This document shows, piece after piece, positions 10,934-31,601 of a stretch of 64,000 nt of DNA. Position numbers and translations under genes: made by a program. How positions within the stretch are numbered: the first letter of the stretch is position 1; the number at the start of each line of letters is the position of its first letter. Under the pieces are notes generated by a model. That model was not told the origin of the DNA. It worked only from the letters and a program-made list of their open reading frames with translations, and ran no database searches. The DNA is from Phaeosaccion multiseriatum (taxonomy: Eukaryota > Protista > Ochrophyta, other classes). The stretch is taken from contig OZ218955.1 of NCBI GenBank assembly GCA_965112735.1, forward strand, positions 3,596,001 through 3,660,000, in the 5' to 3' direction.

Positions 10934-11422
10934 CTCTCTCCGCGTGTGAATGTATGTCACTCCACGTCCTGACACCAGGTGGGGTCCGGTGCCCGCAGTG
11001 AGAAGATCCGCACCTACAACTGGAAGGACTCGCGCTGCTCCGACCACCGCATAGGCAAGGTCAACTCTTATGGACCTATTTGGCCTTCCCTCTTGTTGAC
11101 TTACTGCTATTATCCTACCCTCACCCTCATGACTTACTCGAAGTACTGGCCTACCCTTGACCACAGAGTAGGCAACTAATCTTCCCTCTCAGTGACTTAC
11201 TTGCTACCCTAACCTTAATATTTATGATCACATACACTGCAAACTGAAAACTGACCCTTGCTGCCCTGACCGTTACCCTTAACCGTTACCCCTATAGGCA
11301 AGAACTTCCCTCTGAGTGACTTCATGGGCGGGAACATCGACGCCATGATCCAGGCTTGTTCCGTGGTGGACCAACAAGCCATGATGCAGGAGATGGCAGA
11401 GGAACAGGTTAAGGGCAAATAA
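7452..11422 (+). CDS. prfA: Peptide chain release factor 1, plastid-targeted, ~11 exons (upstream in-frame ATG at 7359 possible)
   Basis: [42 protein letters not shown] (PxT motif of RF1), [38 protein letters not shown] and RSEKIRTYN. The N-terminus is hydrophobic and ends in ATAF-MP (ASAFAP-like). One intron is GC-AG (8727-9011). Confidence 0.95.
9353..9460. repeat. Intronic ~56-bp tandem duplication (2 copies)
   Basis: gcagtgtggtgtagagagtgaggcagggaggtgtacagaagggccgtgaagt occurs twice in a prfA intron. Confidence 0.85.
9880..10045. repeat. Degenerate intronic minisatellite (~35-42 bp unit, ~4 copies)
   Basis: A unit like ctgctgcccataYRcctccRtctccctcctgcc recurs in the prfA intron. Confidence 0.7.
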
Positions 11423-24826: not shown

Positions 24827-27800
24827 ATGAGTGTCAGCATCAAGGTGGGCGTGAGGTGTAGGCCCTTCACAATCGACGACAGCCTTGGCGTGGACCTTCA
24901 GCAGAACGATGACGAGAACGGAGAGGTACGAGAGAACACGAGGTTTTTGCCAAATGTGCTTGAGGGCCAGCTTCATTCGTACCCTGCGCCCCTCCTACCC
25001 AGTATTCAGTACTTGGTGCAGCCGTAAGAGCGGGTGGGCGGCGGTAGAGATGTGTGAAGGTGGAGGAGGAAGGGAAAGGAGAGATGAGAGACCTTCGACA
25101 AGAAGCCTCAAACATGCGCCGCACCCCCCTCCCCCCCAGCAAGCTGGATAGTTCCCTATTAACACTCGCCTCCCATGTCTGGAAGTGTCCATCGGCAACC
25201 AAAGAGACGCTCGTGGTCGTACCCTTGACCTCTCACGCCCTTCCTGTTGTGCGTCTCTGCCCCTCCCTCCCTAGGTTAATCTCATCAACTCTACGTACTC
25301 GACCAACCGCTTCCCGTTCACTTACGCTTGGTAAGTGAGCGCACCCGTCTGTGTGTGAAGCGATGCTGTCCTGGGAGGGATAGACAGACACCTAAACAGT
25401 ACAGAGGCATCGAGACTTGCCACGCTCGCTCCTCACCCTACTCACTTTCTCGCTACCCTGACCACTGACCACTACCACCAGCCGCCGGCCCTGCTCTGTC
25501 TAACCTTTTCAATCTCCCCTCTCTTCTAACAAGCGCCCCCTGCTGACCACCACCCATCGACCCACGCATGGTCCCATGTCACGCCGGTCCATGCTCCACA
25601 GGTGGTCGGCCTATGGATACCAGCGCCGCATCCAGAGCGACAACGATGTGGCAGATAACATGAAGCTCATCGACCAAGAGGCCGTGTACACCGCCTGTGG
25701 GCAGAAGATCATGAACGATCTCATGGTACGTGCCTATTGCTTGGTGGTTCGTTATGTCCTTCCTTCATTCGCGAATCGTGTGCTGCATTGATTGCCCTGG
25801 GCATTGCATTGTATCCATCAAGCAAGAACCTTCCTTTTTACACTCAAGCAGTCAGTATGCAGCAGCGTCAACGCACAAGCGCAATATCCGTTCGATCCAT
25901 TCACTCGTGTACTTTGCACTGCATGGATGGCCTGCCGCCTGCTCTCTTGTCACGTTTGCTCTCTTGGGCTCTCTCTCCCTCTCTCGTCCTACCTCTCACA
26001 TGCACGCACACGCACCCCCACTCGCCCCATCTCTCTGCCTACCCCTCTGCCTCTCTCCTACCTCTACCCTCTCTCCCTTGCAGGAAGGAAACGCCGTGGT
26101 GCTCTTCGCCTACGGTCTGTCAGGCTCTGGAAAGACGTTCACCGTCTTCGGACCCGATGCTGTCGACATCCCAGAGGCTTGGTTCAAGTAAGTGAGAGCG
26201 TTGGTGGTTCAAGTGACGGCAGTCATGATCCCAAAACACTACGATTGAACTGAACTGAGTGCCATCCATCCATCCATCCCTCCCTCCATCCATCCCTCCC
26301 CTCCCCTCCTCTCCCCTCCCCTCCCTCACCCCAGGCACGCTGAGCCGCATCCTCTGTGGGGCATCTTCCCCCGCCTTGCCTACGCTCTCTTCAAGGACAA
26401 GAAGGACGGATGGAAGATCACGATGTGAGTGAGTGCGTGAGTGAGGGAGGGAGCGAGGCAAGGAGTGACCCGCTCTCACCTTACCCCCACCTCCACCACC
26501 ACCCTCACCTTCACTCTCCCTCCTCCCCTACCAGGAAGTACTTCCAAAACGTGGTGGATACAGTCCGAGACCTCATGAGCCCCGTGGCCACAGAGTCCCA
26601 CTACAAGAACGGCATGAAGAAGGACGAGGACGGCTTCACCGACATCGAGTGGTGTCAGAGCCTGCCCTTGAACACGTGGGACGATCTAAGAGAGGCGTTT
26701 CAGAAGGCCAACAAGAACAAGGCTATCGCCCCTACGCAGTTCAACCATCAGTCCACGAGAGGCCACTGTATTATGACGCTTGAAGTGGAGATGCCGCACC
26801 CCTCGCAAGAAGGTATGTTGCGTCATCGTAGTGTTCGGTGTTCCCATGTAGCAAAGCGCTCATCTTTCCTTCCATTGTCCCCACTCCCCTTTAGGCATGA
26901 AGCAACGAGGCCGAGTGTACGTGTGTGATCTTGCCGGAACGGAGCCCGCTGGGGACATCGTGTACGCCAAGTACGAGAAGAAGGTGGGTCAGAGACGTCC
27001 TATCACCGGTCATTGACTTACACTGAGTCATTGACTTACACTGAATCGAATCCTAAGAGAGAGACAAACTCTGGAGCCCAGGGAGCCAAGTGAGCCTACT
27101 GACGCACACTCAATCGATCATTGACTTACACTCAATCGATTCGTTCACTGACATGCGACAGGTGTTCGAAAACGGAGAGATCGAGCACATTTACCAGGGT
27201 CCTCACGCGGACGCAAAGAAGACAAAGGAGCTGCAGAGCCAGGTGAGTGGCTGGTTGGTTGGTTGGGGGGTGTCAGGGGGACAGAGGGGGATATGTGAGT
27301 GTCTGAGTGTCAGGACAGAGGGTGGGTGTCTGAGCAGAGGATGGGTGGGTGGGTGGGTGTGGGAATGGGGTGTTGCCCATACGCCTCCAACATGCCCTCC
27401 CCTCCCCTCCCCGCCCCTCTTCTCCTCCCATCTCCCACAGGGCATGAAGATCAACTTGTCTCTGTCCGAGATGGCGCAGTTCTTCATGAAGGTACGTGTG
27501 GTTTCTGTTAGACCATAAAGGAGTGTCTGAGTGGTTGGTTGGTAGTGAGCCGACCATTAAGAGAGCCTCCCTCCTCTAATGCGAGTGCGCCCATACGTCT
27601 CTCTCCTCTGATCCTTGCCCCTCAACAGATGGCGGAGGCTGTGAAGAAGAAGAAACTCAAGCCGGGTGCCTCCATCCCGGGCTGCAACTCATACTTCCTC
27701 TGCAAGTACCTCAAGGACACCATGCTGCAGGTAGAGTCACAGTTGTCGTACAGTTTCACTTTCAGTTTCAGTTTCTCGCCGTCAGAGAGTGTGAGTTCCG

Positions 27801-30800
27801 AGTCGCTTGATGAATCGAAGCTCTGCTGTGCTTCTGCCCCCTCTCACTGAATGTGCCGATCCATCCACTACCATCCACTCACCCATCCACCCACAACCCA
27901 TTTACCCACCCACGCACACACCCACCCTTTCACAACAGGCCCGCACGTATCTCTTCTGTGCGGTGCGTCCCGAGGTCAAGTATCACCCCTACACCTTCTC
28001 CACCCTCGGCTTTGCCACCAATGCCTCTGTAGTGAAGCTTCAGCCCAAGAAGGCCACAACCGCCGCGTCGCCAGCGGAGAGGAAGTTGATGCAGGAGCTG
28101 GAGGAAATGAAGGTGAGGAGGAGGAGGAGGAGGAGGAGGGGGAGAAGGGCATGATGATGAAGTACTGGTGAAGGGCGTGCGCGTGTGCGAGAGAGCGTGT
28201 GTGTGTGTGGGCGTGGGTGTGTGCGTGGGTGCGTCGTGACACCCTGCTAAGGAGTCGAAGGGATCTTACACTCAGTCCCTCTGGTGGCTAGCATTCCACA
28301 TAACGAAGTACACCCCTCCCTTCCTTCCCCCCTCTTTTAACAGGCCATGTTCGAGAAGCTCCGAGAAGAGAACACAAAGCTTGCCCAGGGAGGAGGCGGA
28401 GGAGGGGAGGGAGACTCCTCTCAGCTTGAGGCCATGCTTGCCGCCAAGCAGGACCAGCTCAACAACGTACTCATGGGCAAGGGCGACGCGGAGGGCGGCG
28501 GAGAGCAGGTGAGGTGCACGTAACCGTACTGAAATACAGTTACAGAACTATCCTCCTCCTCCGCCTCCTCTTCCTCCCCCCTCTCTCTCTTTCTCTCTCT
28601 CTCTTCTCTCTCTGTCCTTTCCTTCTTGTCGCACCGCTTGCCAAATTGTCTCACAGTTATCGTACACACATCCTCTCTTGTATATCCAACAGGTGGACAG
28701 CGAGGCGGTGATGATGGCGCAGCAGAGAGAGGAGTACGGCAGGAGGGGTATCGACTTGTCTTACTACGAGAAGGAGACCTCTCAGCCCCACTTGATCAAC
28801 ATCGACGAAGGTGTGTATGTATGTGCGTGTGTGCGTGTGTGCGTGTGTGTGTGTGTGTGTGTGTGCGTGTGCGTGTGCGTGTGTGTGTGCGTGTGCGTGC
28901 GTCGGCAGCGAAGAAGGGCGCCCTGCACGTTCATTCAAGGAGGAGGAGGAGAAGGAGGAGGAAGGCCAAGAAGAAGAACAAGAACAACAAGAAGAGGAGG
29001 AGGAGGATGAGGGGGAGGAGGAAGAGGAGGAGGAGGAGGAGGAAGAGGGGCGGATAAAAGAGAAGAATGAATCCTTTTGTTGTCACTTACTTCCAGCCTG
29101 AGGAGCGAGCACATGACCGATGGGAACACGCCTCAGTTACAGTTTTCTGTTACCTCTCCTCAACCTCTCCCTCCTCTCCCTCCCTCCCTCCCTCCCTCCC
29201 TCCCTCCCTCCCTCCCTCCCTCCCTCCCTCCCTCCCTCCCTCCCTCTCTTCACCACAGACCCATTCCGAAACGAGCGTTTCGTGTACATGCTTGGGCGTG
29301 CCGTGACGGTGTTCGGCCCCTCTGGAGACATCCGCCCCCTCTCCATGGGGGTTGTTAAAGACCATTGCAGTATAGAGAGGATCGGGGGCGAGCCAGAGGA
29401 GGCGGCATCGAGCGAGGCAGCAGGTGATACAGCTGCAGCAGAGGGAGAGGCAGGGGCCGGAGAGGGGGAGGAGAAGGCGGAAGGAGAGGAGCCTGCTGCC
29501 GCCGTGGCTGAAGGGGCCGAGGGAGGAGAGGAAGCAGCAGCACCACCAGCAGAGGGGGCAGAAGCAGCAGCAGAGGGAGAGAAGGCGGTGGGAGGGACGG
29601 AGGGAGAGGGAGGAGGAGAGGAGGGGGAAGGAGCAGCAGCAAGCCCTCCCGTGTCTGCTGGCGCTGTGAGGATTGTGCTGGTGGGTGGTAAGGGTGAGAC
29701 CTTTGTGAATGGAGAGATCGTCGAGGAGGGGCAGAGAGTGGAGTTGAAGACCTTCGACAGGATTGCCTTGGGGAGCGGGGAGCTGCTCTCCTTCCGCCAG
29801 CCCGGTGTGGAGCTGCCTGAGGTGAGTGAGTGTGTGTGTGAGTGAGTGAGTGAGTGAGGGGGGGAGGGAGGTAGGGAGGTAGGGAGGTAGAGAGGGAGGG
29901 AGAGAGGGGAAGAGGGACGCAGAGAGAGGGATGGAGAGAGAGTGAGGTACTAAACTGTTGTTGTTGTTGTTGCTGCTGTTGCTGCTGCTGACGATGTTGC
30001 TGCTGTTGATGTTGTTGCTGTGTCGTGTTCTCTCGCCCCATCGCCTTCCCCAAGGGCCAAGACGCACCCACCCCCGAAGAGGCCGTGGAGGAGCTGCAGA
30101 GAGCGATGGCCAGCAAGGACACAAAGGCACAAGCCATGCTGGAGGAGAGAATGAAGGCCTTCGAGGATGAGAAGAAGAAGTGGTGAGTTGGGGGGGGGGG
30201 GGGGGGATGGAGGGAGGAAAGGAGGGGAGGGAGGGAGGGTTCAGAGGGAGCTTTGTCCTTCGTGCTCCCCATCAATGCGACGCGACGTGACAATACGTAA
30301 CCCTTCCTTGACTTACTGACAGGGCGGAGCGGCAGCAGCATGCGGCGGACTCCGGAGCGACATTCGACGATGAAGAGCCCACCATGGATGAGGAGAAGGA
30401 GCGGGCCTGGCAGGCCATCGACAGGGATATTCTCGAGGTGAGGGCAGAGCAGGCAGGGCAGACTCTCGAGAGGGGCTCTCGAGAAGGGCTATCGAGAGAG
30501 GCTTTTGGAGAGCTCAAGAGGGCTCTCTCTTTCTCGTACCTCACTCGCTCCGTGCTGATTGGCACTCACTCACCCACGCCACTCACGCAATCCGCGCTGA
30601 GTGGCACTCACTCACTGCCTCACTCGCACACTGCCTCTCTCGCAGCTCTCTCTCTCTCACGCCATCTACTACCATATACTACCATCTCTTCTCTGATACC
30701 ATCCACTGCCACCACCCCATCCACTGCCATCCTCCTCCAGGTGCTGCCCAAGACCAAGGAGGCCAAGAACATCGTGAAGCTCATGGACAGGGACTCCCTC

Positions 30801-31601
30801 ACCTTCGACGTAGCCCTGCAGCGCTGCGAGGACAGCTCCAAGAGTGGAGGGGCAGCGGCGGTGCCCAAGGTCAAGGTGAAGGTGGTGAATACGGTGTTCA
30901 GTGAAGGTGGGGACTGTCTGGGATCGAACTCGATTCTGTTGGACCCCATCGACTTCCTCAGAGGCTTCAGCATCCTCAAGGACGAGTTAGTGCACCTCCG
31001 AACGGCCCAAGAGAACGATCGCGAGTACACCGTCAACGATTACAACGACCCCATCAACCTCCTCTTCAACAACACCTTCCACCTCGGCACGGGCATCGTC
31101 TTCCCCGAGTTCAGTCAGTACAACCTCGAGACTGAAGACGACGAGAAGATGGTGAGTCAGAGGCGTACCATCATCCATCATTGACTTACACTCACCAAAT
31201 CATTGACTTATGTTCAGTCGAATCGCGAGATGAGAACGGTGTGTCGACACCGACTAGTGGCTCTCCTTGAGATTTCTCCGAGCCTATGCTCGATAGTGTG
31301 ACCACATTCCTCACTGACTCACACCTAAATCACTACATCACTGACTTACGCTAATCGACCATTGACTTACTCTATTCGATCCTTGACTTACGACAGGTGG
31401 ACATCAAGAACGTGTCCCCACCTTACAACAACATCGGCGCCTTCGAGATCACGTGGACCCCCCTGGGAGGAGCGGATGAGGAGCACTGGGGAGACCCCAT
31501 CACAGAGCCGGAGGAGCCCAAGGACCTAATTGGCAAGGCCTGGACGTATCGAATCAAGATCAAGGGCGCCACAGGTGGGTGTGATGGTGATGGTGATGAT
31601 G

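Follow-up and report, generated by a model that had tools for sequence, protein, structure and literature searches.

Introner elements, also termed introner-like elements, have been described in Micromonas, Aureococcus, fungi and dinoflagellates (PMC11282704). Their families comprise numerous similar introns, spread over unrelated genes. Introners possess terminal inverted repeats (TIRs) as well as TSDs, and derive one of their splice sites from the duplicated target. Intron transposition by reverse splicing, for which evidence has been reported from Oikopleura (as cited in PMC3296678), should leave homology that ends precisely at the splice sites. Break repair has also been implicated in intron gain, and in most of the cases described the filler either has no known source or stems from paralogue or organelle DNA. 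Besides these, the foldback or subterminal-repeat non-autonomous transposons, including FB elements, En/Spm and Ac/Ds, have a variable centre, with repeats of a short motif in the subterminal region on either side. To our knowledge, introns whose sequence has a nameable source are few, and the debate on how introns are gained and turned over still draws on a small number of examples.

This paper describes two introns, designated A and B, of a single kinesin/FHA gene in a 64,000-nucleotide stretch of DNA (the window) from the stramenopile alga Phaeosaccion multiseriatum. A sequence-only reading of the window had proposed that these introns represent a new introner family. Here, both introns are compared with each other, with the 67-Mb genome in which they reside, and with homologues of their host gene.

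Materials and Methods

Whole introns were searched against the genome by BLAST, and their conserved parts by two sequence profiles, R1 for the 5' module (83 nt) and R2 for the 3' module. Searches with the kinesin gene used its exons one at a time. The codon table was based on homology-verified exons and on a Pfam-verified trehalose-phosphate synthase ORF. The strand of unit-bearing loci was assigned by locus-wide strand scoring, combined with reading by eye.

Results

Introns A and B are separated by approximately 4.2 kb in one kinesin/FHA gene, and the features involved are the following (coordinates are those of the window).

26973..26983, plus strand: exon end before intron A, 11 bases ACGAGAAGAAG, 10/11 identical to the bases before intron B
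26984..27161, plus strand: intron A, 178 nt, phase 0, GT..AG (GTGGGT...GACAG), at the end of the kinesin motor domain
26984..27052, plus strand: 5' module of A, composed of the donor, 26 nt, two TCATTGACTTAC units 18 nt apart, and TCGAATC
27053..27095, plus strand: middle of A, 43 nt, without demonstrable kinship to the middle of B
27096..27161, plus strand: 3' module of A, composed of a degenerate unit, an exact unit flanked on either side by a CACTCAATCGAT tail, another degenerate unit, and CGACAG at the acceptor
27162..27164, plus strand: GTG after intron A, which may form a 3-nt direct repeat or microhomology together with the donor GTG
30306..30323, plus strand: 3' end of the tenth intron of the kinesin gene, TCCTTGACTTAC-T-GACAG
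31141..31151, plus strand: exon end before intron B, 11 bases ACGAGAAGATG
31152..31396, plus strand: intron B, 245 nt, phase 0, GT..AG (GTGAGT...GACAG), located in the gene's conserved tail region
31152..31224, plus strand: 5' module of B, composed of the donor, 26 nt, two units 22 nt apart, and TCGAATC
31225..31309, plus strand: middle of B, 85 nt, without demonstrable kinship to A and unique in the genome
31310..31396, plus strand: 3' module of B, composed of four units at a spacing of approximately 21 nt with (G/T)CTA(A/T)TCGA tails, and CGACAG at the acceptor
31397..31399, plus strand: GTG after intron B

The splice sites, coordinates, phase 0, and the GTG behind each acceptor agreed with the sequence-only reading for both introns. 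To judge from their homologues, A and B are real introns; both junctions were bridged colinearly, with no residues missing, by environmental homologue contigs (21) and by the proteins P0001 and P0113, the homologues being colinear across junction A (YAKYEKK|VFENG) and continuous across junction B (for example, residues 131 to 133 of P0013).

The similarity of A and B is far beyond chance, with a whole-intron local score of 57 against a shuffle maximum of 29. The identity of 34/41 nt counted from the donor was reproduced, and A and B are homologous, as had been claimed, through 5' and 3' modules that are in register with the splice sites. These modules gave z values of 12.9 (5' modules, 69 nt in A and 73 nt in B) and 9.5 (3' modules, 66 and 87 nt), the last 12 nt of the introns are identical at 10/12 positions, and the order and spacing of the parts are alike. 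Moreover, when all core units were masked, 18/22 of the donor-proximal nucleotides were still identical (P about 0.0025). The middles (43 and 85 nt) displayed no significant global similarity (z 1.7), and their local score was not above that of shuffles. The terminal word of B is also found in the tenth intron of the kinesin gene, the remainder of which is unrelated.

Both introns contain the reiterated CATTGACTTAC units from which they were said to be built. Three exact copies of TCATTGACTTAC are present in A, and B contains one exact copy in addition to five with 1-2 mismatches; the units of A and B lie on one strand in 10/10 cases and are not inverted. TRF arrays in the introns were of 18 nt and 21 nt, the 3' module of B having a period of 21 with 2.4 copies, and a repeat search of the introns detected direct-repeat families of 25-36 nt. 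The same type of search yielded 0 pairs of inverted repeats in either A or B, and inverted arms, as found in a foldback or inverted-arm MITE, were absent. The TIR that the donor itself had been thought to form was reduced to an 8-nt complementarity between the donor (GTGAGTCA) and a unit core (TGACTTAC). A structural role at the RNA level was rejected: in the MFE structures of both introns the donor is paired to a unit, yet the fold z values were -0.3 and -1.1. An intron-hosted snoRNA or similar was discarded as well, since neither intron matched Rfam at E values up to 1 and the folds were no stabler than those of shuffles.

The proposal of an introner family was to be abandoned in case these two copies were the only ones, and BLAST together with profiles R1 and R2 revealed just these two. 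Whole-intron BLAST of A and B against their own 67-Mb genome returned self matches only, and neither BLAST nor the two profiles detected a third copy of the 5' or the 3' module in this genome. Profile R1 assigned 77.7 bits to A and 84 bits to B, and at most 24.5 bits to all other loci; with R2 these values were 52, 41, and at most 18 bits, respectively. A strict unit-plus-tail pattern matched in A only, genome-wide, and the relaxed pattern, a unit variant with a CT(N)WWTCG tail, had 6 matches in the genome, 4 of which are in A and B. Apart from A and B, unit tails of the AATCGA type occur in just one other intron. Looser relatives that share only units with A and B were encountered in the introns at L009 and L041, in unrelated genes on other contigs; their z values with A and B were 4-9, compared to at most 3.5 for control introns, and L041 and B have a 16-nt exact word in common. 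The donor word GTGGGTNAGAGGCGTA was found again at other donors. The donor 15-mer GTGRGTCAGAGRCGT with at most 1 mismatch was not enriched (36 matches versus 55 in the control), and about 5/28 of the matches examined were donors in the same register.

The 12-nt unit core proved to be a genome-wide intron-end word, with 127 adjacent pairs versus 4 in the control. In one orientation the core (CCATTGACTTAC) is branch-site-like (TTGAC / CTTAC), and its reverse complement (GTAAGTCAATGG) is 5' splice-site-like; the units may have a role in splicing. In three unrelated genes (L092, L087, and L084) the donor is in the same register within the unit, and two introns (L077 and L088) are foldback-like, with donor-like units at the 5' side and branch-like units at the 3' side.

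The exons that flank A and B had been considered unrelated, which holds for the exons at large and fails for the last 11 bases before the donors, of which 10/11 are identical. On the 5' side the homology thus continues for 11 nt upstream of the splice site into the exon, instead of ending at the splice site as had been supposed. Among 1452 codon-aligned 11-mers from coding sequence of this organism, the empirical probability of an identity of at least 10/11 was 1.1e-4, or 6.7e-4 for stretches that end in [AT]G. Downstream of the acceptors, A and B are identical in GTG only (3/3). Homologues carry YA(K/E)YEK and ETD(D/E)E..M at the same places; by this alignment the flank bases belong to the ancestral coding sequence instead of having been co-inserted, and their identity is therefore pre-existing microhomology. 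The exon flanks of 12 other unit-bearing introns share the usual AG|GT only, without a preference for GAGAAGA, which counts against a target-site preference of a transposon.

The GTG that follows both introns is present as reported but uninformative, since 4/12 acceptors of the kinesin gene are followed by GTG. Most donors begin with GTG as well, and the GTG (or AGGTG / GGTG) at both junctions of A and B is uninformative as a candidate TSD. With two copies only, homology that crosses into the exon, no TIR, and no informative TSD, the introner family is unsupported in the form in which it had been put forward. Internal duplication of the gene was dismissed as the source of the pair, the exons around A (motor) and B (tail) being unrelated and each aligning to its own part of the homologues.

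Discussion

The explanation that we favour, and to which we assign about even confidence, is that A and B are sister introns that originated by gene-local copying of DNA between the two sites, through microhomology-guided repair or conversion. Such local copying is favoured over a genome-wide introner family by the lack of any further copy in the 67-Mb genome. Repair of a break, or of a stalled copy, at either site would have used the other site, 4.2 kb away, as the template. Priming could have occurred in the near-identical 11-nt coding stretch immediately before the donor (ACGAGAAGA[A/T]G), and resolution on the GTG after the acceptor, so that copying would have covered the entire intron, or both ends at the least, in register with the splice sites. 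The copies would subsequently have diverged to about 85% identity, with gain and loss of 21-22-nt units by slippage and replacement of one middle. The outcome may have been a new intron at an intron-less site or the overwriting of an existing intron (ectopic gene conversion), and the copied material would itself consist of the common intron-end word of this genome.

Break repair or ectopic conversion calls for an identifiable template nearby, and A and B are each other's only relatives in the genome; pre-existing coding sequence provides microhomology at both junctions (10/11 upstream, 3/3 downstream). The copied tract is not continuous (z 1.7 for the middles), and because the middles are not demonstrably homologous, a simple whole-intron copy needs a later replacement, or else two separate conversion tracts. 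Several observations speak against copying: a stretch of 11 nt is short for classical gene conversion, conserved ends around a variable middle are also typical of non-autonomous transposons, and the core unit is located at intron ends genome-wide, with the L009 and L041 relatives in other genes.

An old, decayed introner family of non-autonomous DNA transposons, of which A and B would be two survivors, the second created by local hopping within the gene, is possible but in our estimation unlikely. The subterminal, reiterated 12-nt units of such elements would provide branch-site-like and donor-like signals, and insertions would thereby be spliced. This accords with the occurrence of the core word at intron ends in more than 100 places, with the shared unit register of the L092, L087, and L084 donors, with the foldback-like L077 and L088, and with the looser relatives at L009 and L041; conserved ends and a variable middle are likewise encountered in many non-autonomous elements with reiterated subterminal motifs. 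No intron is present at either site in any homologue contig that covers the junction, which nearly all of the 21 contigs do for site B and the ten or so that reach the motor domain do for site A. The contigs, from one metagenome scan and mostly intron-free or cDNA-like, share none of the introns of this gene; the relatives L105, L106, and L114, which do bear introns, have none at site B. However, a third copy of either module is missing from the 67 Mb, despite the identity of about 85% that A and B retain. A TIR is lacking, and the sole candidate TSD, GTG or AGGTG, is ordinary here. Moreover, chance would have to account for the 10/11 identity of the exon flanks (P about 1e-4 to 7e-4), the units at either end of A and B share one direction, and the C8 paralogue in the same genome appears, from HSP ends only, to have an intron at site A and another near site B, in which case the position of A would be old.

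A considerably less probable alternative is an RNA route, in which an excised intron was reverse-spliced into the same transcript, reverse-transcribed, and recombined into the gene. Both copies are in one gene, both are phase 0 at protosplice-like sites ([AT]G|GTG), their homology is in register with both splice sites, and for Oikopleura there is reported evidence that introns were gained by transposition (as cited in PMC3296678). The copy is not limited exactly to the intron, as the 10/11 match of the exon flank illustrates, and neither the 8 additional exon bases that are identical ahead of the protosplice site nor the unrelated middle is explained by this route, which has no specific footprint testable on sequence alone.

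It is very unlikely that A and B arose without any copying between them, by independent build-up of common intron-end words through slippage and selection for splice signals. Units are indeed sorted by orientation along introns in this genome, as strand scoring of the unit-bearing loci indicated, core units are common, and the donor word of A and B recurs elsewhere. Such convergence leaves unaccounted for the 18/22 donor-proximal identity that persists with the core units masked, the nearly private AATCGA-type tails, the common order and spacing of parts, and module profile scores that are 3-4 times those of any other locus.

The dispersal of the core unit at intron ends, and the kinship of the L009 and L041 introns to A and B, imply that some dispersal process exists in this genome. 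Tentatively, and with rather low probability, the 12-nt core might mark an introner-like system of this stramenopile alga that is large and has not been described. If so, this would be a modular, minisatellite-forming element with a unit that serves as a 5' splice site or as a branch site, depending on its orientation, and its arrays or foldbacks could build both intron ends in either orientation of insertion. A and B would then constitute one locally propagated sublineage, and the L009 and L041 introns older members.

In case the target site was intron-less, the pair would show, as a clean footprint, that an intron was gained by templated repair. The probable template, a sister intron at a distance of 4 kb, can be read directly, and so can the likely priming and resolution sites, which are the 11-nt and 3-nt identities in ancestral coding sequence. 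The pair also cautions against calling introner families from pairs, and introns in this genome share splice-signal-like repeat words for reasons that are not necessarily transposition.

Among the known systems, introners resemble the A/B pair in intron-intron homology between mostly unrelated exons, in the splice-site register, and in splice-signal-like words. They differ from it in copy number and distribution, A and B being two copies in one gene, in the TIRs and informative TSDs that A and B do not have, and in the 11 nt by which the A/B homology enters the exon. FB elements, En/Spm, and Ac/Ds share the short motif that is reiterated in both subterminal regions and the variable centre, and in L077 and L088 of this genome the unit does form inverted arms as in foldback elements, whereas the units of A and B all have the same direction, and neither a terminal inverted repeat nor multiple copies were found for A and B. 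Intron transposition by reverse splicing, as reported from Oikopleura (cited in PMC3296678), is comparable in its homologous introns in one gene and its protosplice-like sites; the A/B homology, in contrast to what this mechanism predicts, continues into the exon upstream, and A and B have different middles. Finally, the copying of introns during break repair has in common with A and B the identities at both junctions (10/11 upstream, GTG downstream), the templated sequence, and the local nature of the event, and what sets A and B apart from the break-repair cases described is their likely template, namely a second intron within the gene itself.

Two introns of a kinesin gene share homologous ends

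The gene that harbors the two introns lies on the plus strand and encodes a kinesin with an FHA domain, as judged from the Pfam FHA match and from homologues matching the motor-domain exons. Named homologues come from Triparma (kinesin motor domain-containing proteins), Phaeothamnion (a partial protein), and Albugo. Exon-by-exon searches showed that the translations of the exons flanking A and B are directly adjacent in 21 environmental contigs and in the homologous proteins P0001 and P0113, with 0 residues missing, and both are therefore true introns.

Intron A: 26984-27161, plus strand, 178 nt
Intron B: 31152-31396, plus strand, 245 nt

The 34 of 41 matching nucleotides reported by the sequence-only reading were recovered over the first 41 nt from the donors, as were the reiterated units in both introns, which measure 21-22 nt and have the core TCATTGACTTAC. 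This core occurs in A as three exact and two degenerate copies, and in B as one exact copy and five copies with 1-2 mismatches, all units being on the same strand. Similarity between A and B greatly exceeds chance expectation: the local score was 57 with a shuffle maximum of 29, and the donor-proximal 22 nt matched at 18 of 22 positions (P about 0.0025) when all cores were masked. Segment-wise comparison yielded z-scores of 12.9 for the 5' modules (69 and 73 nt in A and B) and 9.5 for the 3' modules (66 and 87 nt), versus 1.7 for the middles (43 and 85 nt), of which the local score was not above that of shuffles. Both ends are thus homologous, in register with donor and acceptor, whereas relatedness of the centres is not demonstrable. 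A cheap-gap global alignment contained 157 matches and 27 mismatches, its middle part being untrustworthy.

Two further introns of this gene were also observed. One has a 3' end, at window positions 30306-30323, equal to the terminal word of B (TCCTTGACTTAC, then GACAG); the remainder of this intron is G-rich and unrelated. In the other (window 28812-29258), (GAGGAG)n makes up the 5' half and (CTCC)n the 3' half, which together gave miRNA-precursor-like Rfam matches; these were sub-threshold and reflect a low-complexity hairpin, providing no evidence of a miRNA.

Copy number and transposon hallmarks

Whole-intron BLAST of A and B against their own genome (67 Mb, 22 contigs) returned only the introns themselves. 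The profile of the 83-nt 5' module scored 84 bits for B and 78 bits for A, followed by the 3' unit of A itself (24.5 bits) and at most 21 bits at all other loci, and the 3' module profile scored 52 bits for A, 41 bits for B, and at most 18 bits elsewhere. Moreover, four of the six genomic occurrences of the unit variant with the CT(N)WWTCG tail lie inside A and B. The introns as such therefore exist in two copies only, and the proposal that they represent a family of introners, i.e., non-autonomous transposons creating spliceosomal introns, is not sustained for them.

A search for inverted repeats in A and B found none, and the terminal inverted repeat proposed at the donor is an 8-nt complementarity of GTGAGTCA and TGACTTAC; RNAfold pairs these words in both introns, in folds no stabler than shuffles (z -0.3 and -1.1). 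The GTG is indeed present at both junctions of A and B and is ordinary here: it stands after 4 of the 12 acceptors of the kinesin gene and begins most of the donors. No Rfam family matched A or B.

Two introns elsewhere in the genome (G000) are looser relatives, neither with profile scores as high as those of A or B:

L009 intron: L009:1468-1606 (G000:C12 near 724000), minus strand, 139 nt, in a putative dynein heavy chain gene, judged by eye
L041 intron: L041:1501-1712 (G000:C3:4967125-4967336)

In comparisons with A and B, the former reached z-scores of 6.3 and 8.6 and the latter 3.7 and 6.2, with control introns at 3.5 or less. The parts of the L009 intron are arranged as in A and B, from the donor through two units, TCGAATC, and one more unit to the acceptor. 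Outside the kinesin gene, the CT(N)WWTCG tail type has two genomic matches, one of which is the L041 intron; its donor word agrees with that of A and B at 14/15, and its 3' unit with tail (TGACTTACTCTATTCG) shares an exact 16-nt stretch with a unit and tail of B.

Exon flanks and age of the intron positions

Homology had been proposed to stop at the splice sites, but it crosses the 5' splice site: the 11 exon bases that precede the donor, ACGAGAAGAAG for A and ACGAGAAGATG for B, are alike at 10 of 11 positions. Verified coding sequence of the same organism supplied 1452 codon-aligned 11-mers, from which the chance of at least 10/11 is 1.1e-4, or 6.7e-4 for pairs that share the ending [AT]G. 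The flanks are ancestral coding sequence: homologues carry YA(K/E)YEK at site A and ETD(D/E)E..M at site B. Target-site preference is an unlikely cause of their identity, because a dozen other unit-bearing introns are flanked by exon sequence with just the usual AG|GT. The pattern is the expected trace of copying primed on short pre-existing identity, and neither random transposon insertion nor reverse splicing explains it easily.

No intron is present at A or B in any homologue contig that covers the junctions concerned; since the relatives share none of the introns of this gene, this absence says little about A and B in particular. Three environmental contigs (L105, L106, and L114) have clear introns elsewhere in the kinesin gene and none at B, and P0001, the closest relative, is uninterrupted over eight intron positions of the kinesin gene, B included. 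The genome also contains a paralogue of the gene:

Kinesin/FHA paralogue: G000:C8:2880676-2887791, 41-80% identical to P0113 per exon

The two genes seem to have some intron positions in common, at about P0113 residues 280, 310, and 362, and to differ in others. HSPs of the paralogue end at P0113 residues 279/284, which corresponds to site A, and a further break falls between residues 799 and 813, close to site B. These breaks suggest that position A, at least, is old.

The core word at intron ends across the genome

The core word is not private to the kinesin gene: TCATTGACTTACACT with at most one mismatch occurs 46 times in the genome versus 2 for the reversed control, and two copies of TTGACTTAC within 8-38 nt were found at 127 places versus 4 in the control. 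These pairs mostly represent arrays of 19-29-nt units, e.g., CCATTGACTTAC followed by TACCCACCCA. In the fetched loci 40 distinct arrays were inspected, with gene strand inferred by the codon table of verified exons and junctions read by eye. In gene sense, arrays in the donor-like orientation (GTAAGTCAATGG, the reverse complement of CCATTGACTTAC) lie right at the 5' end of the intron in 11 cases, and those in the branch-like orientation (CCATTGACTTAC) end 3-45 nt upstream of acceptors in about 15.

Arrays at 5' ends, examples: L092, L087, L084, L069, L064, L072
Arrays at 3' ends, examples: L065, L067, L081, L083, L076

Loci L092, L087, and L084, in unrelated genes, have the donor in the same register, GTGGG(T/C)GGGTAGTA(A/C)GTCAATG. 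The introns of L063, L087, and L009 carry branch-like units beside the donor, as in A and B. Both orientations occur, foldback-like, in a myosin-gene intron (L077-L080, G000:C3:2046160-2046360) and in intron L088:1180-1560, where the 5' end is made of GTAAGTCAATGG units and the 3' end of CCATTGACTTAC units, a layout that would read alike in either insertion orientation.

Additional observations concern related words. The word GTGGGTNAGAGGCGTATG(G/A), another G-rich intron-start word of this genome, recurs at the centres of L041, L050, L054, L047, and L060, partly at true donors. In the intron at window 11060-11297, both junctions carry the 9-nt direct repeat ATAGGCAAG, and three unit-like words (TTGACTTAC, ATGACTTAC, and GTGACTTAC) lie inside. 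Two GT/GC..AG readings of this intron give identical mRNA. Two five-unit arrays with identical unit variants in the same order, at G000:C5:231989-232112 and G000:C5:517867-517990, 286 kb apart, could have arisen by segmental duplication or be copies of a single element.

Origin of the intron pair

The A-B pair is real and specific. Its most economical explanation, which we consider about evenly balanced between right and wrong, is gene-local copying between sites A and B, guided by short homology, after which units would have slipped and one middle would have been replaced. Descent from an old introner lineage that has almost died out, combined with a local hop, is a good deal less probable. 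Reverse splicing fits poorly and is improbable, and convergence fits poorly as well and is the least credible. The genome-wide intron-end word is a more unusual observation than the A-B pair itself.
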